Source of the DNA: Thalia democratica
Lineage: Eukaryota
NCBI GenBank assembly: GCA_965202585.1
Contig: OZ241830.1
Span: 21,204,001-21,268,000 of the forward strand
Direction: 5' to 3'
Length of the DNA: 64,000 bases
The notes under the pieces were generated by a model that worked only from the letters and a program-made list of their open reading frames with translations, did no database searches and was not told where the DNA came from. Positions 550 through 32,124 of the stretch are shown piece after piece (within the stretch, counting starts at the first letter, position 1; every line of letters starts with the position of its first letter). A program made the translations under genes and the position numbers.

Positions 550-3500
550 GTAAGTTGATTTAATAAGTTTGATGTATAGTTTATTTTAAGTTCAACTACA
601 ATAAGTGTCAATTAGATATAAATTTGTCCTTTAAACTTTGACATTTTTTTAATTTAAAGAATTACTGCAAGTAAATGATGGTATATAAAAACTTTTAATT
701 TATGTTATTAATGGGAGTAAATATTTGTTTAGAGATTATCTTTCAACCTTGTGTCCTAGTAACGATACAAACAAATATTACTATAGATTGCAACAAAACT
801 TTTTTTTCCTAAAACAAACCATCAAAAAGTGGCTGTAATACGTAGCCCTTGTGAATGTACGACATACCTTGTATAAAGCTATTTCAAAAAAACTTATAAA
901 ACTATAACTTGATTAGACATAAAAATAACATGTAAATTTTTACAACAGTAAAAAATACATTTTAAAATCTTAAAACTTATTTTTTCCTCTTTAATGTTGA
1001 TTTTCGTAACTTCTTTATTAAAGAACAAAAGAACTAACATAAACTTTTGTTATATTCCAGAATATATAATTCTAAACAGTGTTAAGTTAGCTTTTAATTT
1101 AAAAAAACTTGGTGAGCATTATTATTTATTACTGCTCACTAAATGTTAGGACACTCTAAATTTTTCTAAAAGTCGTTTAGTCCCAAAAAACAATAGTATA
1201 GTTTTGGATTATTAACTTTTTTAACTTCAATTATTTAGATGAGTAACGTATAATTAAAAAAATTAAAACAACTTGCATTTAACATACAAAGACACTAAAG
1301 TAGATAATAAAACTAAATCCCAGTAATTTCACTAAATTAAATTATTTAAGCAAATCACATTGAATTGAACATTTTAAAAATGTGTATTTACTTCATGGTT
1401 TGACAACAAAACTTTTTAAAATCTATGTATTTTCATTTAAATATAATTTACTAATTGCTTCAAAGATTTTCATCGTTTTGCAGTGTGCATAGTAAATTGT
1501 TAATAGTAAATTTATGCTAGCTAAACTTTATATTATTATTTTTTACATAAAAAGTAAGATGTTTAATGTTAATTTTTATCTAATCTATGCAATTCACTAA
1601 AATTTGCTAAGAAATGTATACAAACAGCTTTTTAAACATGGTAAAATAGGCTATATGTCTGTTTTAGAAAATTTATTCCGTTCAATTGCATTTTTTGTTT
1701 TATATATATTACAGCAGTATGAAAACATACATATTTTGCACATGTTTATTTTAAGCCTGTTTATGAAGCATGTATAAATTCAATGTGAAACTCATAACTT
1801 TATTGAAACGACACAGGAGACAACTGAAGGGAAGGTTGACTACGAGTCGATAGAGTTCAGTTATCCGACGCGTCCCGATGTGAAGGTTTTGAAGGGGTTG
1901 AACGCGAACATCAAACCCGGCCACACGGTGGCGTTTGTCGGTCAATCGGGGTGCGGAAAGTCGACCTGCGTACAGTTACTCGAGAGGTTCTACGACCCGC
2001 TGAAGGGCAGAGTTGTTAGTTTGAAGATATTTTTTTTTGATGTCGGCAAATATTTAAAGTCTTTGGTTAAGTTTAAAAGAGGTTGTAAGTACTAAAACTG
2101 TTTATTAAGTTTTAACAACTGTTTAAACTTAAAAAAAAAGAAAGCTATGATAATTAAAATAACAACGTTTTAAGTATGATTTTACTCGAAGCTTATGTTT
2201 TGAAAAACATTTTTTTAGAAACTTTTTTATATCTTAAGTATATTAGATTAAAAGCGATAAAAACAAATCTATCAAAGAAACAAAAACAACTCAAGTACTT
2301 TTAGTGTTCATGTTATATAGCAAAAGGTATATCGTTTTTGTAAAAACTTTTGGATACAATGCTTAATTTTATTTTAAATACTATGAAGTTTGAAAAAAAA
2401 AACTTAAGTCCTTGACAAGACGTTTAAAATGATTCTCGTGAACCAAGTCCAAGGACCAAATATTATGAGCGTATTTTTGTCATTCGACAATTTATAAATT
2501 ACATAAGCTTAAAACTTTACCGAGTTTAATTCACGTTTGATTAAACAATAAAAAACAGTTAACACTTTATGACTTACAATAAAAATTTTCAGATGTTGTC
2601 CGATGAGGATCTGACGACGATGCAGGTGAGCAACCTGCGCAGCCACATGGGGATCGTGTCCCAGGAACCCATACTGTTCGACACCACCATAGCGGGAAAC
2701 ATCAGGTACGGGGACAACGGCAGGGTGGCGTCGATGGAAGAAGTGGTCAAGTGCGCCAAGGACGCCAACATACACGACTTCGTTAACGGGCTACCCGAGG
2801 TTTGATATTATTTTCTGTTGTATACTAATTATTACAAAAGAAAGCACTCTGTTATAAGTTTTGTAAAAAATGTTCAAATTCATATTGAGCTCTGTTAGTA
2901 GATATTTTTTTTTTCAAGAGACAGTGTTGTGCACGGTTGTTTAACTTAATGTTGAAATTAGTCGTCCAAAACAGCAAATACTAAGTAGAAACTTATTATG
3001 AAGCCTTAAAAAGACTTTAAAGATTAAATGTTGTTCAGGGATACGAAACGAACGTGGGATCGAAAGGTGCTCAGCTGTCAGGAGGTCAGAAACAGAGAAT
3101 CGCAATTGCCAGGGCTCTGCTCAGAAATCCGAAAGTTCTGTTGCTTGATGAAGCCACCTCTGCCTTAGATACCGAAAGTGAAAAGGTAATAACTTGTCAA
3201 CATTATATTTAGTTAAGTTTCTCGTTGACTGTCTATAATATATATATACATCTATATTAGGGGTGGGCAACGTACGGCCCGCGGGCCGGATCCGGCCCGT
3301 GAAGTGAAAATAACCGGCCCCCAAACCTTTTTTAAATTTAAATGGAATCCGGCCCGCGGAAAAAATTGATCCAATATAAATATTACAAAATTTGTACAAA
3401 ACCTTTTTAGAATTAATTTAATAATACAAAAATGTAAGACTTTGACCCTGAAAAAGTTTGTAAAATTGGTTTTTTATTTGTGTGGTGATAAAAACACTTT

Positions 3501-5425
3501 TTTGTTTAAGTATCTTTTTCTGTTTCAAGTCAGTTGAAGCAATCCTTTCTCAAATTATCTAAAAACAATTGTTTGCTAAACTAACTTTGATGATCTTACC
3601 TACCATGATAATTTTCATAAAAAATGGACATGTTAAAAATTGCTGTCTTTTTTAACCAAGATTATTTTAAGTCCAAAAAACCCAGATGTGTAGTGAGTTG
3701 TTTTTTATACTTGTTTAGAAAAGTAAAAAAAGATTTTTAAACATTGACAATTATTTAAAGTAAAACTGCTCAAAATTAAATTTTAGTAAATTTTTTTAAG
3801 TTGAGACTAAAAACTGCACTCTTTTCTGCTATTATTTTTTTTTTTTATTAATGACTTTTTGATTAATTTTATGGTTAAGTTTAGTGATGACCAATTGATG
3901 ACAATAGTTTCACTTGATAATGAGTTTGGTCGTCGTTTCGCAGACTTTCAACAACTAATAGAAGAATTTGATATTGTGTCTTCATAGTTGACGTTTGACA
4001 CCGAAAATGCACCTAGTAATATACAGTTACAACTGCTAAACTTCAATGTGACAGTACACTAAAAAAAAGTTCAAACCTTAAATTTTAACAGATTTTATGC
4101 CCTACGTAACAAGTCAAAGTTTGTTAATTTAAAAAAGATGGCAATGAAGTTACTTGTTTTGTTTAGGTCTATATAAACTAAGTGTTTCATCAAGATATTT
4201 TAATTTTATTTTTTCGCTTTTTATGGTAAAACTGTTTATTATATCAAAATTATTTGTTGTTTTGTTTCTTTTATACGTGCAAAAATCTGTAATGAATCTT
4301 AAGTAGTTTGTTTAAATTTAAAGGTATTAGTTTTATTTTGTAATAGTATTTGATAGTTAACTTCTGAATAATATTATTAATGAAAACTCCAGCCAAGAAT
4401 TGCCAAAATTATATAATTTCGAATAGTTAACAATCTTTTAATGTTTTAGCTTGAAATATTAGGCTCAGGTATTTTTTAGTAAGTAAGTTATTGTTTTTAT
4501 AAGACTAACTAGTACTAATTCGATCCAGAGCTATAATAAATATATAGTTATGAATACTTCATAAAAATTAAAACAAAATTTTATACTTGAGAACCTTGGT
4601 AATTATTACATTGATTCAAAATTCTGATATACACGATAAATTAGCACCCAGCCGGATCCAAATCTTTTTCAAATAAGCTTACATTCGGATCCGGATCTTT
4701 GTCTAAAATTAGTATATAGCCGGTTCCGGATAATATTTACAAATTAGGATCCAGCTGAATCCGGTAGATCGCTAACTCGAAATACTCCGGCCCGCTGAGG
4801 ACTTTTTTTTTTGGATCCGGCCCGTCAACTATTTACGTTGCCCACCCCTAATCTATATATACATATATATGTATAAAATAAAAATCAATAAATCAAAAAA
4901 AATTTCTTAAAGAAAATGTAATAAAAGAGATAATAACCTATTACTAAAAGCATATAACTTAATTTTCGAACTTATAAAAAGTGAGAATTTAGTATAGTAA
5001 ATGTTTTTCAATAGATATACAAAGATTACCTTACTGATTACTTATTGTCTATAAAAGCTTTGATAGTTTTTTGTATTGAACTACTGAAAACTTAAAACAG
5101 TCCCATTGACTGTTGTAATACTTTAAGTTCTTAACTTTAAACCACTAATTTGGCAATTCATTTAAATAATAGCAAATGTAATCTAATCGCTAGCTGGCAT
5201 ACCGAAACTACTATTTTACTCAAACAGATCGTGCAAGCGGCCATCGATCGAGCAACGGAGGGAAGGACGTGCATCGTCATCGCGCACCGGTTGTCCACCA
5301 TTCGCAACAGTGACGTCATAATGGTGATTGAGAACGGGGTGGTAGTGGAAAGCGGAAGTCACGACAAGTTGCTTGAACTGAAGGGAAGCTACTTCTCACT
5401 GGTCAACGCGCAACTGAATCACTGA
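393..5425 (+). CDS. ABCB1: ABCB1/MDR1 (P-glycoprotein)-like transporter, 3' part: join(393..549,1817..2014,2593..2799,3039..3185,5228..5425); 5' exons lie left of the window
   Basis: Spliced translation gives last TM helix ([14 protein letters not shown]), Walker [11 protein letters not shown]-loop VSQEPILF, signature LSGGQ, Walker B/D-loop [12 protein letters not shown]-loop AHRLSTI, stop TGA. All introns GT-AG with matching phases. Exon sizes 157/198/207/147 match those I recall for human ABCB1 exons 24-27. The symbol is family-level; ABCB1 vs ABCB4/5 orthology is not resolved. Confidence 0.93.
1817..2014 (+). CDS. ABCB1: ABCB exon (NBD2 Walker A)
   Basis: CAG acceptor, GTTAGT donor; [10 protein letters not shown]...GQSGCGKST...RFYDP. 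Confidence 0.93.
2593..2799 (+). CDS. ABCB1: ABCB exon (NBD2 Q-loop)
   Basis: TTTCAG acceptor, GTTTGA donor; [16 protein letters not shown]...[12 protein letters not shown]. Confidence 0.93.
3039..3185 (+). CDS. ABCB1: ABCB exon (signature, Walker B); not in the ORF track
   Basis: [49 protein letters not shown], then GTAATA. Confidence 0.95.
3258..4850 (+). mobile_element. Non-autonomous hAT (Charlie/Spin-like) DNA transposon in the last ABCB intron
   Basis: TIRs TAGGGGTGGGCAACGTA / TACGTTGCCCACCCCTA; perfect 8-bp TSD ATCTATAT (3250-3257, 4851-4858); GGCCCG-rich subterminal motifs. Confidence 0.92.
3885..4175 (+). pseudogene. Decayed hAT transposase C-terminal (dimerisation region) fragment
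   Basis: Reads [10 protein letters not shown]...[20 protein letters not shown]...[11 protein letters not shown] with a stop and frameshifts; resembles the C-terminus of GTF2IRD2/Spin-type transposases. Confidence 0.6.
5228..5425 (+). CDS. ABCB1: ABCB terminal exon (H-loop)
   Basis: CAAACAG acceptor; [25 protein letters not shown]...NAQLNH*. Confidence 0.95.
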
Positions 5426-7234
5426 TGATAAATTAATATATGTTTGACTGTAGTAGAGAAGAAAATAATTAGTCTGAGTTTATATTTTAATTGTAGATCT
5501 AATGAATCCTTTGGAAGGATATGTTACTTTGTTTTATTTATTCTAGTACTGTGTCAAAGTTTGTCTCTTCAGCGAAAAAAAGTAGTTTGTGGTTTAAGTT
5601 TTAGCTTATTTTATTTATTCTTCATCAAGGTTTACTGTAAAGACACGTTTCATTCTTTGATCAACATAAAATAATTCAACAACTTTTTTTATCATCTTAA
5701 AAGTAATGTAACAATGTATGATCTATTTGAAAACTTTTAAAGTTCCTTCTTCACTTATTTAATCTTAGATTTTTCATGACAGTTTACTGAAGTTGTGCCA
5801 ATATTTTCAACACAAAATGACTTTATAGCTTTATATTAAGTTAATTTTTGTTAGAAACCGTTTTTTTGTGTTAAATGTGATGCAGTCTCCAAATTTAATT
5901 GATTAATTTATTTAGTTGTTTCTGCAGTGTTACAAACTTTTTTAAGCTGACACGAATTTCTTTAATACTTTTGTCGCACAAACAGAAATCATCTAAAATA
6001 TATTTGTTTAAAGATCGTTTGTATGTGGTATTTACAGCTAACTTTGATTTAGGAAACTAAAAAAACCTTCAACATATTCTTTCCGCGTAATAATTATTTA
6101 ACGTTTATATACGTCTTTAAATCATAAAAGTTAAACAACTTTCTTTATAATAAAAGCTGTGTTCTTGTACTTAAGTCTATTTACTGAGTAGAAGACAACA
6201 TTTATGAAATAGAAAGCACTTTACTTAATTTCAAAAACTTAAATCAATTTAAAGATTAATTACTTCAAATAAACAGTGTAAAAGTGTAGATTGTGTGTAC
6301 AAGTCGTATGAAAACATTAACTATTATAAGTATAATTATTTTAAAAAAACTTTGTCAAAATGTACATTTGTTTTCAATTTTTCACGGTTTTATACTACTA
6401 ATATATCAATTTAGGTTCGGACAATGTTTTTTGTGCAAAATTCTCAAACGGGCGGGATTTGTTCAAAATTGTGGTTTATAAAATTAAACTATAAAGAAAA
6501 ACTCAATAAGTCTTAATTATAATGAAATAATCATTTTATGAATACAACGGTATACTTAATATCAAATAAAAACATACTTCCGAATATTTTGATTAATTTT
6601 TTTTTTCTTGGTTTTAAGCAAGTTGACTTATGCTAAGAAATACATCGCGGACCAGACACTTTTGCTTGGCAGACCAGCCCTTAAACGGACTAAGATTAAT
6701 GCCTAATTGTCGGTTTTGAAATCAGTTTACTAAAGTAAGAAAAATTGCATTGTTTGAAAAACATCGTAAGTAAGTAAAGTTAAGTAAGTTTGTGTAGGCT
6801 AGTTTATTTTTTACAATTTTTGTAAAAGTAGTTGTAGAACTTTCGTGTGATAACTTAAAATAAAAATGTTTAGGTTTTTAAATTATAAGATTTTTATAAG
6901 GATTTCAAAAAAAAGTTGTTTTGACTCGTTTTAAAAACTTTGATACGTTGATCAAGGATCAAAAAGACAAAGAAATATCGATTTAGCCCAACAGCTTTAT
7001 ATAACTTCTTTTAATACTGATGTTTTATAATTGTTTGGCGGCTACTTGTCTGCATTATAAGCTTGCGACGGTATTAATCAATAATAGTTTTATCTCAATA
7101 TAAAAGAAGTTTTTTGACTACCAAAAATTGTTATCTAATGATAATATACACTGTTTTCAAAAAATAAAAAGTTTAAAGAAACAAGGTCGGTTGTGTTGAT
7201 TATTTGCTATAGTAATATCTAAAAACGGTATACT

Positions 7235-7844: not shown

Positions 7845-8484
7845 ATCGAAACAAGCACCTTGTTTATTTATTTCTTTTTAAATCAAGTATCATTTAAACA
7901 AATCTCACCACTCTAAAGTACCAATCTTAAACAAGTATTATTTAAAAAACACTTATAAAATCTTGTATTTTTGTCCCTTATAAATTGACTTAAGAATATA
8001 AAAACTGTACTACAGATTGAACTTATTTTGTGAGGTTTTTTGAGTTGTTATTTGGTATTTTTGCTTATTATAAGGAATTTTTGACAAAAATATTTTTGTT
8101 TTTTTGATTACTGAATATAATTTTGAATAGCTACAGCCGGCAAGCAGTTTTTAAAGGTACTGTTGTTTTTGATATAAGTATAACTATAAGAGCTAATAAA
8201 AGTTTAACAACGTCAGGATAAATAAATTAAAGTTTTACTATACAAATATTATTATGTTAAAACTTTTAGAAAACTAAAGGATGTGCCAGAAAAAATAATC
8301 TTGTATTATCTCAATCACAGTTACACGACAATCAATTATAATTTACTGTTTCTAGGTATAAAATTTAATAATTTAGAACTTTTAAGTAATTTTTAAACAA
8401 ATACGTCACACGATATAATTTTTATAAAAACTGAGTATTACAAGTGAAAGCTACCATTTATACTAAAAATTAATCCATTTAATT

Positions 8485-11848: not shown

Positions 11849-12366
11849 ACTCGGGTTGATTTTGATCGGGTGGATTTTGAACCGGGTGGATTTTGAACCG
11901 AGTGGAATTTGATCGGGTGGATTTTGACTCGGGTTGATTTTGATCGGGTTGATTTTAATCGGGTGGATTTTGAACCGGGTTGATTTTGATCGGGTGGATT
12001 TTGAACCGGGTTGATTTTGAACGGGTGGATTTTGACTCGGGTGGATTTTGACTCGGGTTGATTTTGATCGGGTTGATTTTAATCGGGTGGATTTTGAACC
12101 GGGTTGATTTTGAACGGGTGGATTTTGACTCGGGTGGATTTTGACTCGGATGGATTTTGATCGGGTGGATTTTGACCCGGGTGGATTTTGATCGGGTGGA
12201 TTTTGAACCGGGTAGATTTTGATCGGGTGGATTTTGACCCGGGTGGATTTTGATTGGGTGGATTTTGACTCGGGTGGATTTTGATCGGGTGGATTTTGAT
12301 CGGGTGGATTTTGATCGGGTGGATTTTGATCGCGGGTGGATTTTGATTGCGGGTGGATTTTGAACG
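11849..12366 (-). repeat. Reverse-complement array of the same minisatellite, roughly 33 units
   Basis: CGGGTGGATTTTGAT units; CCCGC-type variants at the outer end mirror the left array. Confidence 0.97.
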
Positions 12367-14544: not shown

Positions 14545-14745
14545 TACCTCGAACTCCAGCTAGTAAAACTTGAACATTAGGTTTATACAGTTGCTACCGT
14601 TAACGATTAGCGATGAGCAAGTTAATAAAAAGATTTATAAATAAAAGATTAGATAACAACGCTACATTCGCAAATAATCATTTTTTTAAGGCGAGGTGTT
14701 AAGGTAGTAATTTGATTGATAACTTGCTTGGTTTAATTTGTAATT
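14545..14745 (+). repeat. Conserved non-coding block, third copy of 51355-51550 / 42210-42420
   Basis: Shares ATTAGATAACAACGCTACATT and TTTAAGGCGAGGTGTTAAGGTAGTAATTTGATTGATAACT. Confidence 0.85.
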
Positions 14746-17669
14746 TATTATCTTGTTTACTTTTACTTGTCTTTAAAATTAAATAAGTTTAAGATATACA
14801 TTTTTACTAAAATCAATAAAGTGTTTAATAACAATGATGTGCTTTTTGTAAAAAGAATAAAGTCACACTTTAGTTGACATTTCTTTTCAAGTACTTAACG
14901 AGTTTAATTGTTCTAAAAGCCGACCAAAATCTGTAAAAAAAATCAAAAATAAGTATATTCACAATTTTTTTTACTCAAACGTATTGACTTTACATGTATC
15001 TTGTTTTTATAAAGTTCATTTAAAATTGTATTATTTTTATAGTTTAAATAAGAACAAAACTAAAATTTAGGATAAAATTATTTTAAAAAACATTAACCAC
15101 AGTATCTAAGTTCTTAAAACTGTAATAAATATTGTGAAAACACAGATCTTTCCCTTTTTTTAATAAATTCATTTATGTTTTAAATAAAAAAAACATTATA
15201 CCTTTTATGAAATTAAGAAACTTATAAAGTAAAATACGAAAATAATATTATGACTACTCAAAAAGTTTAACTCTTTTTTAAATATACAAAAAATTAGCGT
15301 AAACTTTTCTTTTCAAGGTTTTTCATTCATTAGCTATAACTACTTTGGTTTTAATTTTCACGCTTCAGAAAAATTGTCAACTCTCAATAAGTATTTTAAC
15401 AACCTAACATAATTACTGAAAAACAAACGAAAAAACATAAATTAGTCACTTTTTTGAAGTAGTTTTGTTGTCTAAATCGAGATACGATAAATTTACTCGC
15501 TAATATCGTTTTATCAGTTTTCAACAAAGGAGTTTAAGAACATGACAACTTTTATAATAGTAATGTTCAAGTGTATCTATTGTCTTTATATATTGTGAAT
15601 ATTAATTTAGAACCTTTATAGAAAATGAAAACTATGTGATTTTAAATTAATGTCTTATCTTTTAAAGTTTGTAAGTATTCGTGTATAACTATAGCTTTTG
15701 GTAAATGTATTAAAAAAATTATCAAATGTTGTATATATTAAATGGTTTAGATTGAAAATTAAAAAATAACTAAAATTTTGAACTATAATTAGATTCTAAT
15801 ACATATTATAGTAAGTTTCGTTAACAGGTAAATAGCTAGTTGTGTACGAAAAATCGGCTTTAATAACTGTACTCTTGTATATTTTTATGCAAAATGTTTT
15901 TGTTTTGAATGCATAAATGAAAAAAGATATATCTAGGTATAAACACAGGCATAAATAATGTTTCAAATACGCTTTTTTAACAACACATTTTTAACAACAG
16001 TCTATTGTAAATAAATCGAAATATATAATAAATACTCGGATGCTATTCTTAAATGTTTTGTTATTTTCACTATATATCTCCAGAAACATTACTGAAGAAT
16101 AATAAGGTATAAAAACAGTTTTTCACTAAAATAAAAAAATATTATTTAAATGCTAATACTCATCTTAAATAATCTTAATATATCTTAAATGCTAATAATA
16201 ATAAATAATAGTCAATAAAGAGACTAACAAAAGTAGAAAAAAAAAAGTCTTGTAAGAAACAAATAAATTCTACTTTTGTTAGTATCATTAATGACTGATT
16301 AGCATTATAGACAACAGTATAAGATACATATCATTGATAACTATGCTAGTCTCAGAAGTTGTAAATGATAAAACTTCATTTTTACTTGGATGTGATGAAG
16401 TTTTTAATTGATTCTTAGTTTATTAGAATATTTGTTTTTTAACCTAAATTTATGAAAAGTACTCAGATACTCAGTCTTTGAGGAGTACGGTATTATACAA
16501 TCTAAAAAACATTAATACACTAACAAAATTTAATCTGTACTAAAATTAGTCTGTTAATTTTTACTAAATAAAACATATATATGGTGACTTTGTGACATTT
16601 TTTTGATCAACTGTTATTTACAGTTATTAGTGCAAACGTATTTTTAATTCTAGAAAGTATCTATAGGTAGAAATAATATTTCTGTTTTATCAATTTAGTT
16701 ACACTGAAATTATTGAGTCATTTTATAAGACGTTTAGTAGTTATAATAAAGAAAATGCATAAAGAACAACTAGGTTGTAAGCTTTTTAGAAATAAAAATT
16801 TAAGAGAAAATAAACTTGAGTTTTTAAAAGTTTTCTGTCAACTCAAAACAATAAACTACTAAATTTGAATAGTTCATTTTAGATAAAACTAGAAATTTTT
16901 AAGTATGTTAAATACTTTTTCTTGTTTAACTAAAATTTTAACCTTAAGATTCATAATCATTATAATGTTAATTTAATTTAGGTTTCATTTTCATGATACA
17001 ACATGTAGTAATACTATTTTTTTAGGTTTTCAACAATAACATGAACTTGCTTTATTTATCGAAATTTTGAAGGGTATCACTAATTACTTTATAAGGCTTG
17101 TTCTTTTCTAACTATAACTTTTTATAACTAGCTTTTATGAAGTTTAAATGAAGTCTTTATGAATTTTAAAACTTAATGCAGTTTTATTTAAAAACAAGTA
17201 AACTAAGAAAAATAAACAAAAAGTAGACAGTATCGTTGAAATAAACTTTATTTTGATGTATAACTCTTGTTAAAATAAAAAAAATATTTTAAATATACAA
17301 TAGATTAGTTTAAAGTGATCGAAGTCACAATGCAATAGACACAAGCTAAATTTAAATAGCTAATTAGAAACAAACTTACAAACTTTTGTAAAAGTTTTAA
17401 TCTTTTTGAATTTAGTAGTTAATTAGTTTTTAAATTTTTATTAGTGATAATGGCTGTAGTAAATGTTTTTGTACTCAGTTTGCATGAACTCTTTATTATT
17501 AGGAAATATTTGTAGAAATTTAAAACGATTATATTTTTTTTATATGTATATGCTTTATAGTTTAAGCTAGTTTAATTTTTACGTTTTTCTTTAAAGTTTT
17601 TTTTAAATCTCTAACTAAGTTTAATCAGTTGATACTTTTGTATAACTGTGTAAGTAAAGAAGGAAATTA

Positions 17670-17865
17670 GGTTTAAGAAAACGAGCTTAACGTCTGCACA
17701 AAAGGAAACCTCTTTTTTAACATTAGGTCATAAATTAGCATAAACTTTTCCTTTCAAACTTTTATTATTCTTTGGCGAAACCTTTATTGATTTTATTCAA
17801 AACGCTTGAGAAAAATTGTCAACACTTCATGAATATTTTAATAACCAAGCATAATTGTCTAAATA
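17670..17865 (+). repeat. Conserved non-coding block, copy of 57355-57560 / 35680-35885; older copy at 15290-15420
   Basis: Shares AAACTTTTCCTTTCAAACTTTTATTATTCTTTGGCGAAACCTTTATTGATTT. Confidence 0.85.
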
Positions 17866-18806
17866 AACAAGTATTTTAAAACAGATATTTCAAACTGTTG
17901 CCATAAAGTAATTTAATTTGTAATATATCCATTATCAAATGTAACGTACTATATCACTTTGTTGAATAATATAGCAAAGTTATTCAAATTCAGATGCTTT
18001 TTGATACATAGTTTTAAAAGTATGCAGAAAAGGTATAACGTTTAGTTTAGTTTTAAATTAAAAAATATTCAACTTATTTTCAATAGTTAGTCTGTCTACA
18101 GCTTGATTAGTTGATTCCGCTTCTTATATTTATAATTTAATACAAAATTAAGTACTTTTATGCTTTCCTAAAATAAAAATTTAGATGTTACGTTGAAGTG
18201 TTACACGCTTTGAATATTGTTATGATCAGCAGTTTTTTAAGACTAGAAAAAAATACTACACACTCATTGTTCATGGTTTAAACTTAAACTTTAACTAAGC
18301 ATGAACAACTTTTAAGATAATACTTTCAAAACAATTTTATTGATCGTTTAAAACTGTTCAACAATGGTTTTTAGAACTATTCATTGCAAAAGGATATATT
18401 TAAATGGGTTTCAGAGCTTCCAACTTTATTTTGGAAAAAGTTCAAAAGTCATTAATAATTAGGATTCTATTTTGCAGTCAAAGAATTTTTTGTTCGATTT
18501 GAAAATAGCTACTCAACAATAATGCACGCAAAAAAATAAAACAGTAAGTTTTTAGAAGTGGATTAAAGAAAAACAATAAAGTTATTTTATAAATAAGAAA
18601 TCTCAATTGCTAAACAAACTGCATGTAAAACTTGATTCATTAAAAAATAAAAATATAAAAACTATATTTCTTGCAACTAAACTGTTATTACATCAGCGGA
18701 TGTAATTTCAAATGTCATTTTGTGTCAAAAAAAAAAACTATCCATAATATTTAAATAAGGCCAAGACAGTATTTTATTTTTCGTTTAATTGCAGCAACTT
18801 AATTGC

Positions 18807-18905: not shown

Positions 18906-20602
18906 AGACCGACCCTTTTAAACTAGTCAACAATATTTAACCTAAACCTATAAGGTTTATAGTCACATTTTTTTTATAAAACTCTTTAAGAAGCGGTATA
19001 AAATTTTATAAATGTGCTTTACTGTTAATATTGTAAAAGATTACTAATTAGAAATTAAAATATTAAACTTTGCTACAAACTTCATTTTGTTAATTAGTTA
19101 ACTTTAATCTCTTCTAGGTAAGAAAAAACTCGGTGTTTGTTAGAACTACGTACATTACATATTGTTTTAAGCATTAAATAATACAATGAGTTATGGTCAA
19201 AAACTAAATGCCTTAATAAGATACTTTAAGCTACAATAAATAATTAACAGTTATATCAATGCTCTGACCAAGCAAAATAGTGGTTTTAGTAAATTGCAAT
19301 GAGTATATGGAATATAATAAGAAAATATTGTTTTTTATATTTAAATTATTTAACGACTAAAACTTTGTTTGTACAAACAATATACTACATATTTAGTACA
19401 ATTTAATACTATTGAAGTGATGCATACGATTTTTTTTGATCGAATACTAAAGGTTTTTTATCAGTCAAAAATTAACAAACTTAACAGTAAATTCAATTAT
19501 ACAATACATTTTAGAATTTATTTATTAATATAAATTTTTGATGACCAGTTTAAAACTTTTCATAAACAGTAGGAACATAAAGCATCAAAATCAAAAAACA
19601 GTTAGAGTGTTGTATGTTTTATGTAATATATACGTGATATGTAATAAAAACTAGTTTTTCATTAAGTTGCTTCTTAAATAAATGGTTGATTTTATAACTT
19701 AACGGTTTTATAGTAGACCTTAAAGTTTTTCCTAGACTTTTTAATGATTCAACAAACTGTAAAATCTAAACAGCTTAATCTTTCACATTTGTGCACGACT
19801 AACAAAATTCCGATAATTTAATTTAGATATTTTTAAACGGCCACAACTCAATAAGTAGTATATATATTTATTTTAAATTGCGAATGTAGGTTTAATTTAT
19901 ACCTATAACAACTTTTTTTTTGAAAAACATTAAGTATTTTTAGAGATATGATTATAAAAAAGTAATGATATATAGTAAATTTTAGTATCTAACCAAATTC
20001 TTTTTGAAAAAGATTCATTTTTCAAAAACAAACAAGTGTTTGTAGGTATTAGATAGACCTAGTTACGCGTTTTTTCTCAAATATATGTATATTACTTTTT
20101 AAATTGTCGCCCTTTGAACTTTTTTCAGGGTTTTGTTTGTCAGAGTTTAATTTGTCCGAATTTGAGTTGTCATGTAACCACTTGAAAAAGTTAACAAGTT
20201 CTATTTTACATGTTTATTTTAAAAAAATATTTTTTTTAATAATTTTTTAATTAATAATCAACACAACCGACCAACCGTGTTTCTTTCAACTTTTAATTTC
20301 TTAAAAAATGTGTTTAACATTATTCAGACCTTATTAATGTGTACTCAACAGTAATTCTTTAAATGAAGATTAAATCATTATTTTTAAACATCATCGGTAA
20401 TTTATGATGCAGCTAAGCAGCCGCTAAATAGTCAAAAATCCATAAAAATTAAAGAAGTTTCACTAAACTATAGCAGGGGAGTGTCTATACTTTTTCAGTG
20501 TGAATGCATAACTTTTTGTTCAATAATAAAGTACAGTAACCTGTCACTTAGATACGCCGATTGAGTTTGCACTTTTTAGCTAAAAAACAATGTGTTCAAT
20601 TA

Positions 20603-20850
20603 AAAATAAAAGTTGCAAGTTATGTAGATGATGTCCTTGCAAATCTTACTTAAAATTTTAATTTCCTCAACATTTAAGTATATTTCTTTAATAAAACAAA
20701 ATTTTATAAGTAGTTTAATCTAACAAAACTAAAATGTTATTTCAACTTCTACAGTATCATAAATATTATAAAACAATGTTATTTTAATGTGTACCTTGAT
20801 GGTGTAAGGGTCCTAATGATGGTTATTTAAATTCTCTGGGTTAATCATTT
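20603..20850 (+). pseudogene. Possible highly decayed LINE reverse-transcriptase fragment
   Basis: KIKVASYVDDVL (YxDD), later NKTKMLF and FKF/LG(L)I with frameshifts, in RT motif order. Confidence 0.4.
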
Positions 20851-21854
20851 TAATATCTAAAACCTGTCATTGGTTATTTGTATAGAAAGTATTATTTTAA
20901 CAGAAGTTTCAAGAAAATTTTGAATTTTCGCTACATTAATGTAGTGGTCAAGTTGTTAAAATATCATAGTAAGTTTCTAATAAGCTATAAGAATCAAAAC
21001 TTTAAAAAATATTGTATATGTGTTGACTTTGAAACATTCAACTCAACTTCCAGTTGCTTTGTAGTTTGAAGTGATACGGTTTGTTTCTTGAAAATTTATT
21101 TTAAACAAAAAATAAGCGTAATTAAACTTTATTTATTACATTAAACATTTTTGAAGTAAAATAGTACTTAAAAGTCTAAAATAAATGCATAGCTACTGTT
21201 TAAATACATTGAATAGCATTTTATAATGGAAATCTTAAGCACCTGAGTAAAAAGTCAAACTTTAAAACATTAATTCTTTATGACATCACAACCGAATTTC
21301 AAATTTAAATATATTTCAGCTCATGTCAGCTCAGCTTATAAAAAATCAAAACACTACAAAACAAATAGATAGCCAATTTAATTAAAAATTTGGAAACCAC
21401 ACCACAATAAATGCAAAAAGCGGGTTTCTTACATAAATTAATTTCTTATTAAAAAGCTATAAAGGTCTTTTTTTGATAAAAAGTTGGCACAATTTCAGAA
21501 ACTTTGATGAAACTTTTTAAACTTAAACATGCAAAAAAGGAACTTCTAAAGTTTTAAAATATATCATACATTGTTACATTACTTTAAAGATGATGAAAGA
21601 AAAAATTGTGATATTAATTTATGTTCATCAAAAACTGAAACATGGTTTTACAGTAATTATGGATTAACAACAACAAAAATAAGCAACAACTTAAAATACA
21701 AACTAGTTTTGTTGGTTGAAAAAAACACTTTCACACAGATTTATAATACATAATACAAAGTAACAAATCTTAAAAACGATTCGTTATACTAACAAAAAAT
21801 AGTTTTACAAGCTGTATACTTCATTATCACCTTAGTACTGTTAACTAAATTTAT

Positions 21855-22058
21855 CTATAAACAGTGGTTCAGCTGCGCGTTGACCAGTGAGAAGTAGCTT
21901 CCCTTCAGTTCCAGCAACTTTTCGTGACTTCCGCTTTCCACTACCACCCCGTTCTCAATCACCATTATGACGTCACTGTTGCGAATGGTGGACAACCGGT
22001 GTGCGATGACGATGCACGTCCTTCCCTCCGTTGCCCTGTCGATGGCCTCTTGCACGAT
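21855..22058 (-). pseudogene. Orphan duplicate of ABCB terminal exon, open frame ([12 protein letters not shown]...NAQLNHCL*)
   Basis: CTCAAACAG acceptor retained; 9 nt differences in 195 coding nt vs 5228-5422 (7 synonymous, 2 replacements) plus TGA>TGT stop loss; no intact upstream ABCB exons on this strand. Functional status uncertain. Confidence 0.8.
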
Positions 22059-22730
22059 CTGTTTGAGTATATCATTATTGTTGTTGTGACATCTTTAATA
22101 GGTTTTGCTTACTTTTAGTGAGTTAGAATTATTTAAAAAAAATTAAAAACAAAGTATTAACGGGTAAACGACAAACTTTATTGACTAAAGTTTTGTAATA
22201 GTCAGTTAGAACATTTTGATTTTCTTAACGTTTGATACAACAAAAAAGAAATTGTAATTATTAAATGTAGCTTAAAACACTGTAAACTAATCAGTTTATT
22301 TAAATAATAATAAAAGTGTGAAGTAGCTAATCTACTTTTTACCAGGTTTCAGTAAGAAAAGTGCCGACTTTGTCAAAAACTGAAAAATCGTAAACTGCAC
22401 TGAATAATATCCTTTTTTTGCAGTTTACTAAAATTTTAGTATCTGACGAGATCAGAACTTTTTTATACTGAGACCTGGTAATAAATAGAGTACTTAGTAA
22501 TTAGTTTTTTTATTTATTTTTACAACAAGCAGTTTAAAAGTTTCAAAAACTATAAGAAGTTTTAAAGTAATGTTTTATACCAACTTTATTTAATAATAAT
22601 TAAACATTAAAACTTTATAAATTTAACATTAAAAAGAAGTGTTATATAAATAGATAAATTTCTTTCAACTTGATTCCTTATAAAAAATTGCATCTGATCA
22701 AAAAAAGTTTTTAAGTTAGTTCATGTTTAA

Positions 22731-22736
22731 TTTATT
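22731..22736 (-). terminator. Candidate poly(A) signal for the left protocadherin
   Basis: First AATAAA on the minus strand after the stop at 22989; low specificity in AT-rich DNA. Confidence 0.35.
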
Positions 22737-22791
22737 GATAAAAGCTATATAAAACAATAAAAAAGAACTATATATACAGTTTACAAATTAC

Positions 22792-22920
22792 CTTTTCACC
22801 TTCGGTATCCAGCACAGAGGGAGCGTCATTCAGAAACAGAGCTTTGGGATTTCTGAGAAGAGCCTTGCCGATTGCAATTCTCAGTTTCTAACCTCCTGAT
22901 GGCTGGGCACCTTTAGATCA
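22792..22920 (-). pseudogene. Decayed duplicate of ABCB signature/Walker B exon
   Basis: [41 protein letters not shown] then GTAATT donor; 25 differences in 129 nt, no indels; 5' part of exon missing. Confidence 0.9.
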
Positions 22921-22988
22921 ATTGGGATTGAAACGTTAATCAGATTAAAACTAAGTCCTTCTGTACTCCTCCATCTACTTCACACTAT

Positions 22989-23311
22989 TCACGTGCTAGT
23001 TTTTGGCGAAACCCTGTTGTCTTCGTAGCTCGACAGCTTAGATTTCATAGCCAGCGACAAGTAGTTCTGCTGGGAAAAACTTCCGCTCGACTTGGAAGAC
23101 TGCGGGAACGAAACCTCGCTCGGGTTGGACAACCTGCCGATCGAAGTTGAGTTTGTGACGTCATAGTTGAAACGAGGGTCGTAGTAGAAGTTGTTGGGTT
23201 TGTACACTTGGGGTCGCGACTCATCGTAAGGAAGGGTTTTCGGCTCGCTGCTCGATATTGACTCTTCTGGTAAGTGTTGGAGATGAATCGTGTTTCTATG
23301 AAGCTCGTTTG
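22989..23311 (-). CDS. Left protocadherin exon 18 (Ser-rich tail, stop)
   Basis: AACAG acceptor, phase 1, open to TGA; GC-rich like genuine coding sequence. Confidence 0.8.
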
Positions 23312-26300
23312 CTGTTATTTGTTTTTATTTATTTTAAAACTCTATAATAGTCCTTATTTCTTTTATTAAATCATAAATTAAAAAAAAATATTTTTGTTTT
23401 CAAATTTATTCGTTCAAATTTATTTCATCCCTTAAAACAAAGTTTTGAGTTTAATTTAACGAAATCATAGACTAAGGCTTTTGCTTTTTTTTTTTATTTA
23501 GTCAAGTGATTCCTATCAAAAAAAGCTGTGCACAGTAAATCGTAAAAAAAATTGCACACTAAGTTAACATTAGATTTCAATTATTAAAATTTATATTAAT
23601 CTCAATATTACTGGTCATATATAGTTTAACTAAAAACAAAAATATAGAATAATCCTTTTTAGACTTCTTTTTTTAACATGTTAATTTCTATGCACACTAT
23701 TTCGATTTTGAAAAATGTCTCTTCCAAAAAAAAAAAAAGTTTATTTTTAAGCTGCTTATCAAGTAAGTAAACAATTTTCGTACCACTTTTGTTTCCAGGT
23801 AACCAACAGTTATCACTATGTCCGTAAACATTACAATCTTCAGTGCATTGTGACGTAATAATACTTTTTTGAGTTTCTTCAAACTTCATGGGAGGACAAG
23901 ATGGGATTGGTTTGTATATGTGGCCTAAAAAAATGAGACAACTTTCAGTAAGATTGTCAATAAATTAAGCATAATATTTTTTTTAAATTGTATTGTATAA
24001 GTTGAACATACCGTTGTAAGGATTTGGACTTTTTATCAACAATTCATTGCAGCCGCTAAAGTTTAAGCAAGGGTTTCTGCTTAATGGGTTTGTGTTCTGT
24101 AAAATTATTAGAAATAATTTAAATTTTATTTTGCGTGGTTTTTTCTAACTATAAGAAATTTAGGGTATAAATCACTTATATTTTGTAAAGTATAGAAACA
24201 ATATAACACAGGCAGTTATTACTGAATACAAGTAGAAATATATATAGCATAAATTTATAAACTTAATAGCTGAAAGTTTTCATCGAAATAACTTTTAGGT
24301 TAAAAAATAATTGTTTGAAGAGTAGATGTGTTTAATTCGTGAGTTGATATCATTGAAAACTTTTATTAAACGAATATTAAATTTAAAAAAACGTTCACAT
24401 AAACTTAAATTTTCTTTTATAAACTTAAAGTTCTAAAAGAGTAGAAAAGCAATAAAAATGTTTCTGTGTCCTTCAACACATGTTCATGCAGTGAAACAAT
24501 TCTGAAAAAAAATAGAAATTTTTAAAACCTGGCTTGTAAAGTTCATTGGTGGTTGAATGTTGGTGTATAAATTCGATGTGTATTCATTATCACGTGACGT
24601 CATAAGTTTTTGTGACATCATATCTTTATTTTTCAAACTTTCTTTTTCTCTAAATAATCATTTTAAGTTTTAAAACAAACCAAAACTAGTTTAGTATCAA
24701 TAAAAAGTAACAAACCTTGGAAATGTTTCGGTTTTGTATGAGGAAATAGGTGACAATTGGTTTGATTCACTTATTTCCGTTTGTTGCATTATTTTTTCGT
24801 TATTGCAATTGTAAACATGAGTTGTTTCCTAAAAGTTTAATTAAAAAATTTTATAATATAATGACGCGTATAGTAACCTTTTTAACTTTATTGAAAAAAA
24901 TTAAATGTTTAAAATATGCATTAAGGAAATATAACTTTGTCATCTTAAGTAAGCTTAGGTATCGTTTTTTTTTGTCTTAAGTCTGAAAAGTAAAAGAATA
25001 TTTTTAAAACTTAATTAGAGTTAAAGGCATTTTACAACTAGTCAAACCTTCTTTCTTTGGTTTTTGATAACACAACCAATCATAAAAACAAGAACAAGTA
25101 CAATAAGCAGTATTACGATCACCAAAATTAAATTCATTGTGTAATCGCCAACTTTCACATTTGAAGTATTTGTGTTAGCGTGTTTTATATTAACGTTTAA
25201 AACTATTATTGCTTCTTCTAAGTGACCTTTAGTATCAGTACTTGATGCCTATAAGCATAAACCGTTATAATATTTTAAACAACGATTTAAGAAATTTTAT
25301 ATGCATATGGTGATACGTAATTCGTAACTATTTATTATTTATATTAAAGGTCAAATTACTTAATGATATGTTGATTGAAAACTATAAAAAGTTAACTAGT
25401 ATATTTCTAACCTTCACCACAAGCCTATGCATTCCAACGAAAGTGTCGAGATTATTTTTATTGTGATTTATTTTCAGTTCATTATTATTTATAATCACAA
25501 AACAAGGTGAAAGATCCGGTTTATCGTCCAAACTTAAAACTTCAAAAATTGTTCTTTTATTCCAAACTTTATTGACCTGTTTACAAAACATAATAAGTAA
25601 ACTCTTAATTAAATTTTTTCGAAAAACGTAAACAAACTGTTAGTGTTAAATTCTTTTTATTATTTACCAGTATAATTTTCCAAGTTAAACATAACAAATA
25701 TCTTTTTGACTATATCTATTTTTAAACTCATATTATTACAAAACAAAATTTATTATCTTATTATTATTATTGTTAGTAAACGTTTTAAAACCTCAAACGC
25801 AATTATGACTTGTTGACTATCTATTGACGTGTTTACAGTTGAGAAGTTTTGTGAAGGCGACTTAAACATCAGTTTGTTTTCAACATTTGTTTTGTTTATT
25901 GTAACTTTTACTATTGTGTTTGATTTTAACGGTTCTGGACTTCCAAAATCCGAGGCAGTAACATTTATCTGAAATTTTTTTTCAAAATATTAGTTAGTAT
26001 TGTTTATATTTTTCGCATTTTACATTAATGATTATTAATAATGTTTGAACTAAATAACTGTAGAATTGATAACAGGCAAAATTTTAATATCAAAAATGTT
26101 ACAATTCTTATAATACCTGCCTTCTAAAATCTTGTTAAAACTACTACAAAGTTAATGCATTTAAGAATGGAGTTGTTTCAAAATTCTCTTTGTAAGGTTT
26201 TATTAATGGATTAACTACAAAAAAAGCGCATTTGAGCTACGCAAGGTTGTTACAGAACTTTGCTCTGTAAAAGCTTTAAAATGTCATGACAAATTATAAT

Positions 26301-29300: not shown

Positions 29301-32124
29301 ACAGGTTTGTGATCATTTACATCTTCGATATTCAGAATCACTTTTGTTGTAGCATATTGGGGTTTTTTACCGTTATCACTTGCTTCAATTATAAATGTTA
29401 TACTGAAAAATATAAGTGAGAATTAGTTTTGTAGAGATAATCTATAAAGAACTTAAAAAAACAAAAAATATACAAAGGTTTTTTTGTACATACCCGTTAT
29501 GGAGTTGCCAGTTCAGTTTCTTTTTAATGATTACGTCACCACTTTCCCTATCAACCGATAACAAATCAGGATATGTAGATTTATCAACTCTAGGTGGCGC
29601 ATCCAATTGACCCACAATTTTGTAGTGAACCTGATTGTTGTCAAGACTACCATCTTTGTCCTTAGCAACCACAGTGGTAACCAACGACCCAATCGGGGAA
29701 TCTTCTGGAACTGAGATAACAGAGTTTTCAACATCAAACTCGGGTCTGCAGTCGTTTACGTCACTGATGTGAATTGTGACGTATGTTGATGACGTCATCG
29801 GAGAATTACCCTTATCAGTTGCAGTTAATTTCAATTGAATTATCGACTTGGTTTCGTGATCTGGTAGGAATAAACTGGTAAACTAAATTTACACAGTCAC
29901 TAATTTAAAACAGTCAAAGCAACTTAAAGAAGTAGTCTTATGAATACTTTTTTTAAAAAATAATTAATTAATGAAAATTGTAAAGAGCCTTACAATATTT
30001 TGTAAAAAAATAATAAAATTTGGAAGTTAAACCGTATTCCATTTAATTTTAAATATAATTTTAATAAGTATTTATTTTTTGTAAGATTTTAGTATAATCC
30101 TTAACAAACTAATAGTTTCACACAGGGTTTAAAATTTACTTTAAAAATTTAGCATTTATAATTTGTGAAGTTATACCAACCCAGTTTTCTTTTAGTTCTT
30201 AGTTCAAGATTTTGTCTTTTTGACAACAAAAATTGAGCATTAGCTGCATAAGGATCGTAAATTTCAAAATAGTCATTAATCTGCAGTTTGTATTCAACTA
30301 CGGCGTTCTTGTCTGAAAAATTTAAAACAACTATAAAAAAAATGGTATTTCTAAATAAAACTAAGCTTCTGAAGATACATTTTATATATATATAAAACTA
30401 AGTTATACAGTTTACAGTAAGTTTCTGTCAACTTTGTAACTGTAAAATAATCTTAAATTGTTTTTTCGTTAGCCATACGATTATACTATAGATGTCGAAA
30501 TGTTTATGTGTACTATAAACTTATCACAAAGTACCTACTTATAGTAGAAACTATAGAGTAGTTTTTTGATAACAAATTTAAAAGCGTGTAAACGAGTTTT
30601 TGTCAAAAATAGAAGTCAAAAGTGACTTTAACTGTCGGATGTTTTCAGTTGTCGTAAATTTTGACAAGAAAATCAAAAAATTCATTGATAAGAAAAATAT
30701 TTTGTTGTAAAAATAACACGTTTAAACCATATGGTGAACCATTGTTACTTGATCTGACATTTATAAAAGGTTTTAGATTTATCTTATCAAAAGTCTTGAC
30801 TATTTCAAGGATAGATTTACACGTGTTTTAAAATTGAATTAAAAAAGACACAGTTTTATATACTTTTTCTAACAATCTTTTATAAAATTAAGCTTTTGTT
30901 TAGTAAGTATAACTTAAACTCAAAAACACCTACAAAACCCAACCTAAAAACTTTTAGTTAAATATAAAATAACCGTTATATGAAAGCATTGTTAAGCATT
31001 TAAAATCAATAATGTTTTGTTTATACGATTTTTTTATAAGTGGAAGCGAGTTTGTTTCTTTTGTTAAATACTTTTACTTTTATTATTTTAGTCGCATAAA
31101 ATAAATAAACTTAACTTAAAAAAAATAACTTCAAAGCCTTTATACTCTGAAGCAATTTATTATCATTAATTATATATAGATATTTTTTTAAATATAACTT
31201 ACTACAGTCTGCATCGGATGCTTTATATTGATTAATGTTAAACAGAGATCCAACTTTTGAGTCTTCAGGAATTTCGACTGGAGTTAGATTAGATGCAAAC
31301 ACGGGGAAATTATTGTTGACGTCATCAACTTTAACTCTGACAATTTTGACGGCGCGAATGTTGTCGCTGTTCAAGTTTTTTGACAAACCTACCTGTTATG
31401 TGGTCAGAACGGTTTATTTGAACGTTTTTATTGTGTTTATACTTACGTTGATACTTTTTTTTTCAGAAGTCTTGTAATACCTTAGAATTTCAATTTATTC
31501 CAAAATATTTGATATTCAAGTTTGAACTGGTTATCATATATTTTATTTTAATTCAAGTTTATATGAGAAAATTAATTTACTTATTTTTTTATATCACTTA
31601 ACAAAAAAAATAAATACTAATTTTTTTGTTTAGTAGTAATAAATAAAAGATACTAACTAGTACATTAAGAATGCAATAACAGTTATCAGCACAGTCTGAT
31701 GTGAAATTGATGTTTCTATTTATTCTTATGTTTCCAGAATAAATATCAATTAAAAACAAGTCTTTAACTTCAATCTGATTATCTTGTTTTTGATTGTAAA
31801 CTTTTTTGATTGAGTAAAACCAAGTTTCATTATTTTTTGAGCTCGTAGCTGGCATGTACTGTAACTTTTCTGCTATTGTTGAGCCTAAAGTTTTAAAAAG
31901 CTCATTTGAACTATATAAAAAATCATAGAACTTACTTGATAAACAATATTTTGTCATAAGTATTTAAACGGTTTGTAAATAATATTTATTTTGAAGTTTA
32001 TATAATAAAACAAACCTATTTTGATATCTTCTTTTATGATGACATCAGGTATTTCAACAGATCTTGTTTGTTTACAAAAACTACTTGAAAACACAAACAA
32101 AAATAAAACTAAAGCTTTTATCAT
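22989..32124 (-). CDS. Protocadherin (delta-like, CM2 motif), complete: complement join(32016..32124,31658..31884,31203..31392,30181..30312,29494..29860,29251..29402,27964..28071,27629..27764,27367..27544,26929..27075,25792..25968,25412..25576,25048..25248,24716..24828,24529..24649,24012..24096,23784..23924,22989..23311); 3072 nt, 1023 aa
   Basis: Signal peptide MIKALVLFLFVFSS; EC1 Cys-X5-Cys; linkers DVNNNFP, DVNDCRP, DVNDHKP, DVNEHSP; TM LILVIVILLIVLVLVFMIGCVI; CTEDCNVYGHSDNCWLP matches the CM2 consensus CTxECxxxGHSDxCWMP. All 17 introns GT-AG and phase-compatible with no internal stop. Confidence 0.9.
23784..23924 (-). CDS. Left protocadherin exon 17 (CM2 motif)
   Basis: CTEDCNVYGHSDNCWLP. 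Confidence 0.92.
24012..24096 (-). CDS. Left protocadherin exon 16 (cytoplasmic)
   Basis: NTNPLSRNPC...PNPYN; TTACAG acceptor, GTATGT donor. Confidence 0.75.
24529..24649 (-). CDS. Left protocadherin exon 15 (cytoplasmic)
   Basis: EKESLKN...QPPMNFTSQ; phase fit. Confidence 0.7.
24716..24828 (-). CDS. Left protocadherin exon 14 (cytoplasmic)
   Basis: ETTHVYNCN...KTETFP; AG/GT ends and phase fit. Confidence 0.75.
25048..25248 (-). CDS. Left protocadherin exon 13 (TM)
   Basis: Hydrophobic helix followed by KNQRKK. Confidence 0.9.
25412..25576 (-). CDS. Left protocadherin exon 12 (EC6, degenerate)
   Basis: Open frame with phase 0 at both ends; GMHRLVVK strand. Confidence 0.78.
25792..25968 (-). 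CDS. Left protocadherin exon 11 (EC5/EC6)
   Basis: INVTASDFGSPEPL...VKVTI; donor less certain. Confidence 0.82.
26929..27075 (-). CDS. Left protocadherin exon 10 (EC5)
   Basis: YFKINKSTGKISLRTKLD, then GTAAGT. Confidence 0.88.
27367..27544 (-). CDS. Left protocadherin exon 9 (EC4/EC5)
   Basis: VLDVNEHSPIF...INENFTVG...AKDYD. Confidence 0.92.
27629..27764 (-). CDS. Left protocadherin exon 8 (EC4)
   Basis: LLVLKKNLNRET...IQACDNGVPS; acceptor CATGCAG chosen by phase. Confidence 0.85.
27964..28071 (-). CDS. Left protocadherin exon 7 (EC4)
   Basis: FIKEDSLLGDVIAYITTTDADNGQNS. Confidence 0.88.
29251..29402 (-). CDS. Left protocadherin exon 6 (EC3/EC4)
   Basis: IEASDNGKKPQ...IEDVNDHKP. Confidence 0.92.
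29494..29860 (-). CDS. Left protocadherin exon 5 (EC2/EC3)
   Basis: DHET...ATDKGNSP...ISDVNDCRPEF...VPEDSPIGS. Confidence 0.95.
30181..30312 (-). CDS. Left protocadherin exon 4 (EC2)
   Basis: KNAVVEYKLQINDYFEI...LELRTKRKL. Confidence 0.88.
31203..31392 (-). CDS. Left protocadherin exon 3 (EC1/EC2)
   Basis: VKVDDVNNNFPVF...EIPEDSKVGS...ASDADC. Confidence 0.92.
31658..31884 (-). CDS. Left protocadherin exon 2 (EC1)
   Basis: STIAEK...LFLIDIYSGNIRI...CADNCYCILNVL; 227 nt as in paralog. Confidence 0.88.
32016..32124 (-). CDS. Left protocadherin exon 1 (signal peptide)
   Basis: MIKALVLFLFVFSSSFCKQTRSVEIPDVIIKEDIKI; 109 nt as in paralog. Confidence 0.88.

Follow-up and report, generated by a model that had tools for sequence, protein, structure and literature searches.

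A window of 64,000 nucleotides of the Thalia democratica genome (assembly GCA_965202585.1, contig OZ241830.1, positions 21,204,001 to 21,268,000 of the forward strand) contains an orphan terminal exon of an ABCB transporter gene that is nearly identical to the corresponding exon of an active gene, although the exon next to it upstream has heavily decayed. This raises the question of how a single exon can look conserved in a fragment that is otherwise dead. Three answers were put forward in the original prediction: exon-limited gene conversion between inverted copies, a flip-flop inversion that swaps the 3' end of the active gene, and continued use of the exon through cis- or trans-splicing. 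The analysis leads us to propose that non-allelic gene conversion among three copies of the exon (termed A, B and C) probably keeps the orphan near-identical, with the fragment being spliced in a non-coding form, probably within a protocadherin tail. Positions are those of the window, and features beyond its end are given as window-equivalent positions.

ABCB copies and protocadherin units at the locus

The active gene (copy A) lies on the plus strand. Its last four exons encode an unbroken NBD2 with Walker A, Q-loop, LSGGQ, Walker B and H-loop; they include the LSGGQ/Walker-B exon at 3039..3185 (ABC_tran match, E=5e-13) and the terminal exon at 5228..5428, which ends NH*. The 3' UTR follows at 5429..5950 and the first NBD is located 4-7 kb upstream of the window. 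Database relatives of the protein are ABCB1/4/11-like, and the closest relatives of the exon translation in a protein database search are 75-76% identical, so that there is no close species to polarise synonymous sites. Transcripts of copy A are represented in contigs from three marine metatranscriptomes (X1, X4 and X5): the X1 and X5 contigs join its terminal exon to its LSGGQ exon, with loose ends that match 3154-3183 exactly, and the X4 contig continues from the terminal exon into the UTR of A, with a loose end that matches 5438-5467 exactly.

Two further features of copy A were observed. Its last intron carries a ~1.6-kb non-autonomous transposon-like insertion (ends at 3234-3274 and 4834-4875) with GC-rich terminal inverted repeats of ~42 nt that are 88% complementary, and this insertion is absent from the introns of B and C. 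The A-type mRNA contigs (X1, X4, X5) show fewer mismatches to B than the assembled A predicts, the shortfall being at least three sites each. On the simplest reading, the GAT CGA of the assembled A (5248-5251, codons 7-8) would be a private or rare haplotype; the mismatch counts suggest that wild A alleles read GAC AGG at codons 7-8, as do B, C and a paralogue on chromosome 2.

The orphan copy (B) lies on the minus strand. Read in the direction of transcription, it consists of a dead, 5'-truncated LSGGQ/Walker-B exon (22792..22919), an intron (22059..22791; GT..AG on the minus strand, CT..AC at its ends in the genome), the terminal exon (21855..22058; 65 codons, a 2-codon extension past the lost stop and a new stop TAG) and a copy of the ABCB 3' UTR (21331..21854, homologous to 5426-5950). 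When 5228-5431(+) was aligned to 22058-21855(-), nine nucleotide differences were found, which reproduces the seven synonymous and two replacement changes in 65 codons noted originally: GAT/GAC, CGA/AGG (x2), GCG/GCA, CTT/CTG, CAA/CAG and AAT/AAC are synonymous (A/B), and GCG/GAG and GAC/GAA are replacements. The exon of B is thus 95.4% identical to that of A, and it is 96.4% identical to that of C. Its acceptor is intact, being identical to A together with the 11 nt that precede it, and a change of the stop from TGA to TGT opens the frame to ...NHCL*, as had been described. Identity drops to background directly upstream of those 11 nt and directly after the stop.

Decay of the surroundings was likewise found, with a small correction. 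The upstream exon had been credited with 25 changes in 129 nt; the figure is 24/128 over the ungapped core (22919-22792). Both nonsense codons are present (TAG for the Q of LSGGQ, TGA at the 5' junction) and the motifs are wrecked, LLLDEAT reading LFLNDAP and LSGGQ being hit by the TAG. The UTRs, estimated before at about 70% identity, agree at 72% of 518 aligned nt, where shuffled sequences give ~54%. Equal neutral decay therefore fails to give the asymmetry between the two exons, as had been argued (9/195 versus 24/128, Fisher p=6e-5).

Two parts of the original prediction need correction. The replacements had been read as A>E and D>E in the orphan, but the direction is probably the reverse, the active copy having changed E>A and E>D and the two E of B being probably ancestral: E is found at the first site in the chromosome-2 paralogue and in the wider ABCB family, and at the second site in the chromosome-2 paralogue and in one listed homologue, the wider family being variable there. 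Nor is B the remnant of a dead gene, since only the last 1.9 exons and the UTR were copied and it was never a whole gene. No remnants of upstream ABCB exons were found near B or C by tblastn, and the copied part starts no earlier than residue 143 of the query (the last four exons of A). With its intron kept at the parental position, its truncation and the two nonsense codons in its dead exon, B is an unprocessed (duplicated) pseudogene fragment.

A whole-genome search identified a third copy, C, 6 kb past the end of the window, with its terminal exon on the plus strand at window-equivalent 70356-70553 (G000:C6:21274356-21274553, L008:356-553) and a dead LSGGQ exon (L005:9460-9587). Copies A and C are in direct orientation about 65 kb apart and 97% identical, and A and B are inverted, 16.4 kb apart and 95% identical over 200 nt. 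Apart from A, B, C and the chromosome-2 paralogue (72% identical), the genome contains no other copy of the terminal exon, and no intron-less copy was found in it. Outside the exon the copies are much less alike: flanks of the terminal exon are 57-73% identical, and the intron of B is 73% identical to that of C and cannot be aligned to that of A.

Copies B and C are both part of protocadherin units. Unit U1 (21333-46654, including B) is mirrored by unit U2 (71047-46856, including C), and a third unit, U3, follows U2 in tandem from window-equivalent 77889. In U1, a Cadherin domain is found in an upstream exon at 29442-29834(-), and the last coding exon at 22989..23316 (minus; 90-97% identical to the U2 copy) has an open frame that ends ...SPKTST* with the stop at 22991-22989. 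The segment 22920..22988 (minus) contains the start of the native protocadherin 3' UTR and the junction with the ABCB fragment. Each of B and C lies ~65 nt downstream of a protocadherin stop and on the same strand as that protocadherin, the two protocadherin copies being mutually inverted. The ABCB fragment is absent from U3, whose protocadherin ends in an ordinary UTR, and homology between U3 and U1 reaches down to 22931 and stops there. As B and C have in common a junction that is absent from U3, the tree of the flanks is ((B,C),A).

The identity between U1 and U2 is a mosaic of 56-98% in 300-nt windows, AT-rich non-coding windows included, and is lowest near the centre of the palindrome (~46750) and in the ABCB-derived end (about 70-75%, the exon excepted). 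This pattern suggests patchy arm-to-arm conversion. The spacer of the ABCB palindrome (13425-18731) is collinear with window-equivalent 72662-77826, in direct orientation and at 77-81% identity; the latter stretch lies just upstream of U3, and the spacer is a relic of a protocadherin upstream region. Two satellite arrays (7191-7855 and 11820-12408), mutually inverted and with a period of 15/16 nt (31 nt), are both located in the left arm of the ABCB palindrome and have no counterpart in the right arm.

Transcription and splicing of the orphan exon

A run from the same organism and a different sample (X8, sample S5) contains a contig of 292 nt (contig 17) that covers 22896-22792 with 0 mismatches and continues at 22058-21874, skipping 733 nt with GT..AG borders on the minus strand. 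We read X8, whose record gives no library type, as RNA because its contigs lie mainly on exon-like stretches, one of them 4.6 kb long at a depth of 198, and because the genome is without an intron-less copy. Copy B is transcribed and its original intron is spliced out in cis at the original GT..AG sites, the donor of the dead exon being still in use.

On the protocadherin side, contig 17 ends inside the dead exon, at 22896. Contigs of X8 on 22986-23305 show 7-8% mismatches to U1 and have the letters of U2 at 23037 and 23040, the positions that were checked. The strand of the fragment and its adjacency to the protocadherin gene indicate that it is probably a spliced, non-coding part of the 3' UTR of the protocadherin transcript. 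In the spliced form, the ABCB frame comes behind the protocadherin stop and the TGA and TAG of the dead exon, and there is no ATG before codon 32 of the terminal exon; for these reasons the ABCB frame of B is probably not translated. A functional C-terminal coding exon of ABCB would be entered by an open frame from upstream exons, and B is not. Continued use through splicing, one of the original suggestions, is thus partly borne out: the acceptor is used in cis with the dead neighbour exon of B itself, in a non-coding form. Trans-splicing was not seen, and the splicing in cis, although real, does not account for the conservation, given its non-coding context.

We also considered a chimeric protocadherin-ABCB protein made by skipping the last protocadherin exon. 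The intron that precedes this exon is in phase 1 and the orphan acceptor in phase 0, an arrangement that would leave the ABCB frame unread. On the protocadherin side, joints in X1 contigs (24827>25047, 25247>25411 and 25574>25790; GT..AG, minus strand) outline small protocadherin exons in 24716-25881. These contigs carry 3-8 mismatches each and may derive from U2, from U3 or from other individuals.

Contig 17 is itself a mosaic. It is of B type from the dead exon to exon position 57, has the letter of A and C at position 138 (21921), and is clipped at 21873, just before position 186. As a k=31 assembly at a depth of 3.2x, it crosses an 80-nt stretch that is identical in A and B, so that a chimera formed with A mRNA during assembly and a true recombinant or conversion allele from another individual are equally likely.

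Relatedness of the three terminal exons

Under protein-level selection alone, synonymous sites are expected to diverge as far as neutral ones; synonymous divergence was therefore compared between the terminal exon and the LSGGQ exon, which lies 0.7-2 kb from it. The dS values of the terminal exon are 0.17 (A-B), 0.12 (A-C) and 0.09 (B-C), as against 0.53, 0.79 and 0.36 for the LSGGQ exon; they are thus 3-7 times lower (Fisher p=0.035, 0.0008 and 0.004, respectively). This indicates that the copies of the terminal exon are more recently related than their flanks. Per exon, the B-C comparison gives a dN of 0.39 and a dS of 0.36 for the LSGGQ exon, a ratio of 1.1 that is neutral. The dead LSGGQ exon is a good neutral control, being equally GC-rich (48%) and nearby, and at 19-30% its divergence rules out a slower mutation of GC-rich DNA as the cause.

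Lineage-specific changes, all of them small in number, show the same difference. Changes unique to B amount to 5/195 in the terminal exon and 16/128 in the dead exon (p=8e-4), and those unique to C to 2/195 and 25/128 (p=3e-9). The B- and C-specific changes of the terminal exon comprise three replacements and four synonymous changes, in addition to the lost stop of B and the lost acceptor AG of C (CAG to CAA, with another AG, in-frame, 3 nt upstream); judged from their kind, they are not biased against damage and look unconstrained.

Three observations argue for exchange between the copies. Firstly, not one difference separates A from C along 161 consecutive nt, and their six differences are confined to the first 24 and the last 13 nt (permutation p=1.3e-4); the longest identical runs of A-B and B-C are 80 nt each (p=0.076 and p=0.18, respectively, in a GENECONV-type test). 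Secondly, the 12 variable sites among A, B and C crowd towards the ends of the exon (p=4e-4; third positions only, p=0.005), which is expected if tracts are anchored inside an island of homology and unexpected under coding or splicing constraint. Thirdly, B and C have changes in common in their dead LSGGQ exons, but at positions 11, 138 and 147 of the terminal exon A and C are derived and B has the state of the chromosome-2 paralogue (E at 11 and 138), as polarised at these three informative sites by a single outgroup only 72% identical. The derived states shared by A and C contradict the flank tree ((B,C),A), so that an exchange between A and C is required. Conversion is moreover active at the locus, as indicated by the mosaic identity of the U1/U2 palindrome with its AT-rich non-coding stretches. 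Combined, the dS values, the crowding at the edges and the conflict between trees make exon-limited conversion the best supported of the three original suggestions. It had been conceived as an exchange between inverted copies; the network is wider, and the direct copy C gives the clearest tract (161 nt).

The coincidence of the borders with the exon is awkward for conversion. Identity ends within ~10 nt of the exon ends in all three pairwise comparisons, and tracts with random ends would not do so. Conversion therefore needs the additional, plausible assumption that only the island can pair, the borders being presumably set by indels that prevent pairing in the AT-rich flanks and by the position of the LSGGQ piece at the edge of the duplication. 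RNA-templated (cDNA) conversion was also considered; it fits the sharp border on the 5' side but would be expected to homogenise the LSGGQ exon and the 3' UTR as well, and these have diverged.

The conversion that we favour probably came about as follows. An old inverted duplication would have taken in the 3' end of a full-length ABCB gene, namely the terminal exon and the UTR together with the last intron and 128 nt of the LSGGQ exon in front of them. The copy would have been inserted ~65 nt past the stop of a protocadherin gene in convergent orientation, on the strand of that gene. The composite of protocadherin and ABCB fragment would then have been duplicated again to give copy C just outside the window, and the fragment would provide the protocadherin transcript with a terminator and with a non-coding 3' UTR that contains an intron. 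The GC-rich exon of 198 nt may be the sole stretch with enough similarity left for pairing; the intron and the UTR, both AT-rich, and the shorter LSGGQ piece presumably left the exchange and then decayed. With tracts anchored inside the island, the ends of the island would erode and its middle would be repeatedly reset. As the donor pool includes a copy selected for its protein, the orphans would inherit an open frame and a synonymous-looking pattern of changes and would be unselected themselves.

It is possible, though rather unlikely, that the dead fragments are partners in both directions: E>A (VQEA motif) and E>D would have arisen in the drifting orphan C and been imported into the active ABCB gene, and recombinant B/A exons like that of the mosaic contig 17, possibly along with inversion alleles of the 16-kb interval, would segregate in the population.

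Purifying selection on the orphan exon itself, either for a role in the protocadherin transcript (exon definition, 3'-end formation, an NMD-sensitive 3'-UTR intron or a regulatory RNA element) or for translation in some isoform, is an unlikely explanation, although several observations agree with it. Copy B is transcribed, splicing makes use of its original sites, its acceptor and the 11 upstream nt are those of A, and the borders of identity are exactly those of the exon. Compared with the inferred ancestor, B shows 0 replacements, 2-4 synonymous changes and the loss of the stop, and this replacement-free record also fits purifying selection. Its dead exon, furthermore, holds 48% GC with balanced changes (6 GC>AT, 5 AT>GC), whereas that of C (36% GC) decays one way towards AT (18 GC>AT, 2 AT>GC; B versus C, Fisher p=0.067); this GC retention could reflect exon-definition pressure or GC-biased conversion. 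Set against this, the synonymous sites are 3-7 times too similar for selection at the protein level and the ABCB frame is shut upstream by the protocadherin stop, the TGA and the TAG, with no ATG before codon 32. The stop of B and the acceptor AG of C have been lost, and changes crowd at the exon ends, where splicing signals are most constrained. A structured or known RNA finds no support as the cause of the conservation: no Rfam match was obtained on 20500-24000 at E<=0.1, and the exon showed no unusual RNA fold, being no better than shuffles (z=+0.70). A role at the RNA level in B and C would also leave the derived states of A and C unexplained. Scans of metagenomes with an exact 29-mer and with a degenerate codon pattern gave 0 matches.

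Flip-flop inversion is very unlikely. Recombination between A and B would flip the 16.4-kb interval and periodically place the distal half of B and its UTR in the working gene, where they would be selected. The inverted orientation, identity and spacing of A and B would allow this, and contig 17 of X8 (B-type to position 57, A/C-type at 138) has the look of a recombinant, but at its low depth, with k=31 and across the 80 nt common to A and B, a chimera is possible. Those A-type mRNA contigs that extend beyond the exon have the LSGGQ exon of A (X1, X5) or its UTR (X4), the UTR of B at 72% identity shows no sign of shared use, and an inversion leaves the same island in the direct copy C unexplained. 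An orphan exon produced by a chimeric or mis-joined assembly is extremely improbable: the nest of palindromes and tandem copies is hard to assemble, but B has differences of its own and its flanks have diverged, 82-88% of the words of 21300-23400 occur in contigs from two DNA-like runs (possibly those from which the assembly was made), and the run from the different sample (S5) has the B-specific dead exon spliced to a B-type exon.

Comparison with known systems and implications

Working genes that exchange short tracts with a nearby non-functional copy, with flow either way, are represented by the pairs CYP21A2/CYP21A1P, GBA/GBAP1 and VWF/VWFP1, and the ABCB locus resembles them in this respect. 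The pseudogenes of those pairs are whole-gene copies with broadly high identity; here, one exon of 198 nt is in exchange, the flanks have diverged, the intron is saturated with respect to A and there are two orphan partners. In the ampliconic palindromes of the primate Y, arm-to-arm conversion keeps the arms more than 99.9% identical along their whole length. The U1/U2 palindrome likewise has inverted arms on one chromosome that are kept similar, with tracts of 90-98%, but for the most part its arms have fallen to ~70% identity, exchange being now confined to patches.

Conversion between linked paralogues of Caenorhabditis occurs in direct or inverted orientation and depends on local rather than average identity, and its tracts can be shorter than 200 bp and often extend into introns (Katju and Bergthorsson, PMC3966223). 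Close linkage, both orientations, local stretches of identity and short tracts are common to the two cases, but here the tracts stop short of introns. The tandem KRTAP1 genes show coding-limited concerted evolution by short-tract gene conversion with abrupt borders (Zhou et al., bioRxiv 10.1101/282418). In both systems homogenised coding sequence gives way abruptly to ordinary divergence where it ends, the pattern is not accounted for by reverse transcription, by codon adaptation or by purifying selection, and the case is made from sequence common to the copies. In KRTAP1, however, all copies are working and selection for homogeneity was invoked for the sharp borders. At the ABCB locus two of the three partners are non-coding fragments, and the sharp borders must therefore stem from lost flanking homology or from another cause.

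The mechanism, non-allelic gene conversion, is an ordinary one and the locus is a tidy three-copy example of it. What is particular here is a single-exon island common to one live and two dead copies, the erosion of this island at its edges and the fragment spliced as a tail, probably of a protocadherin transcript. A pseudogene fragment can mimic purifying selection, with an open frame and a low dN/dS, purely via conversion from a selected donor, and such mimicry is a trap for annotation and for calls of function that are based on dN/dS. In a very AT-rich genome the conversion island has shrunk to a single GC-rich exon that is eroding from its edges, and the protocadherin next to it has apparently recruited a gene fragment as a 3' UTR with an intron. 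If exchange proceeds from orphan to gene as well, dead fragments would supply an ABCB transporter with amino-acid variation; with C as the donor in the exchange between A and C, the working transporter would owe two of its amino-acid changes to a dead fragment. Should exon-limited homogenisation be common in this genome, the dating of paralogues would be affected genome-wide.
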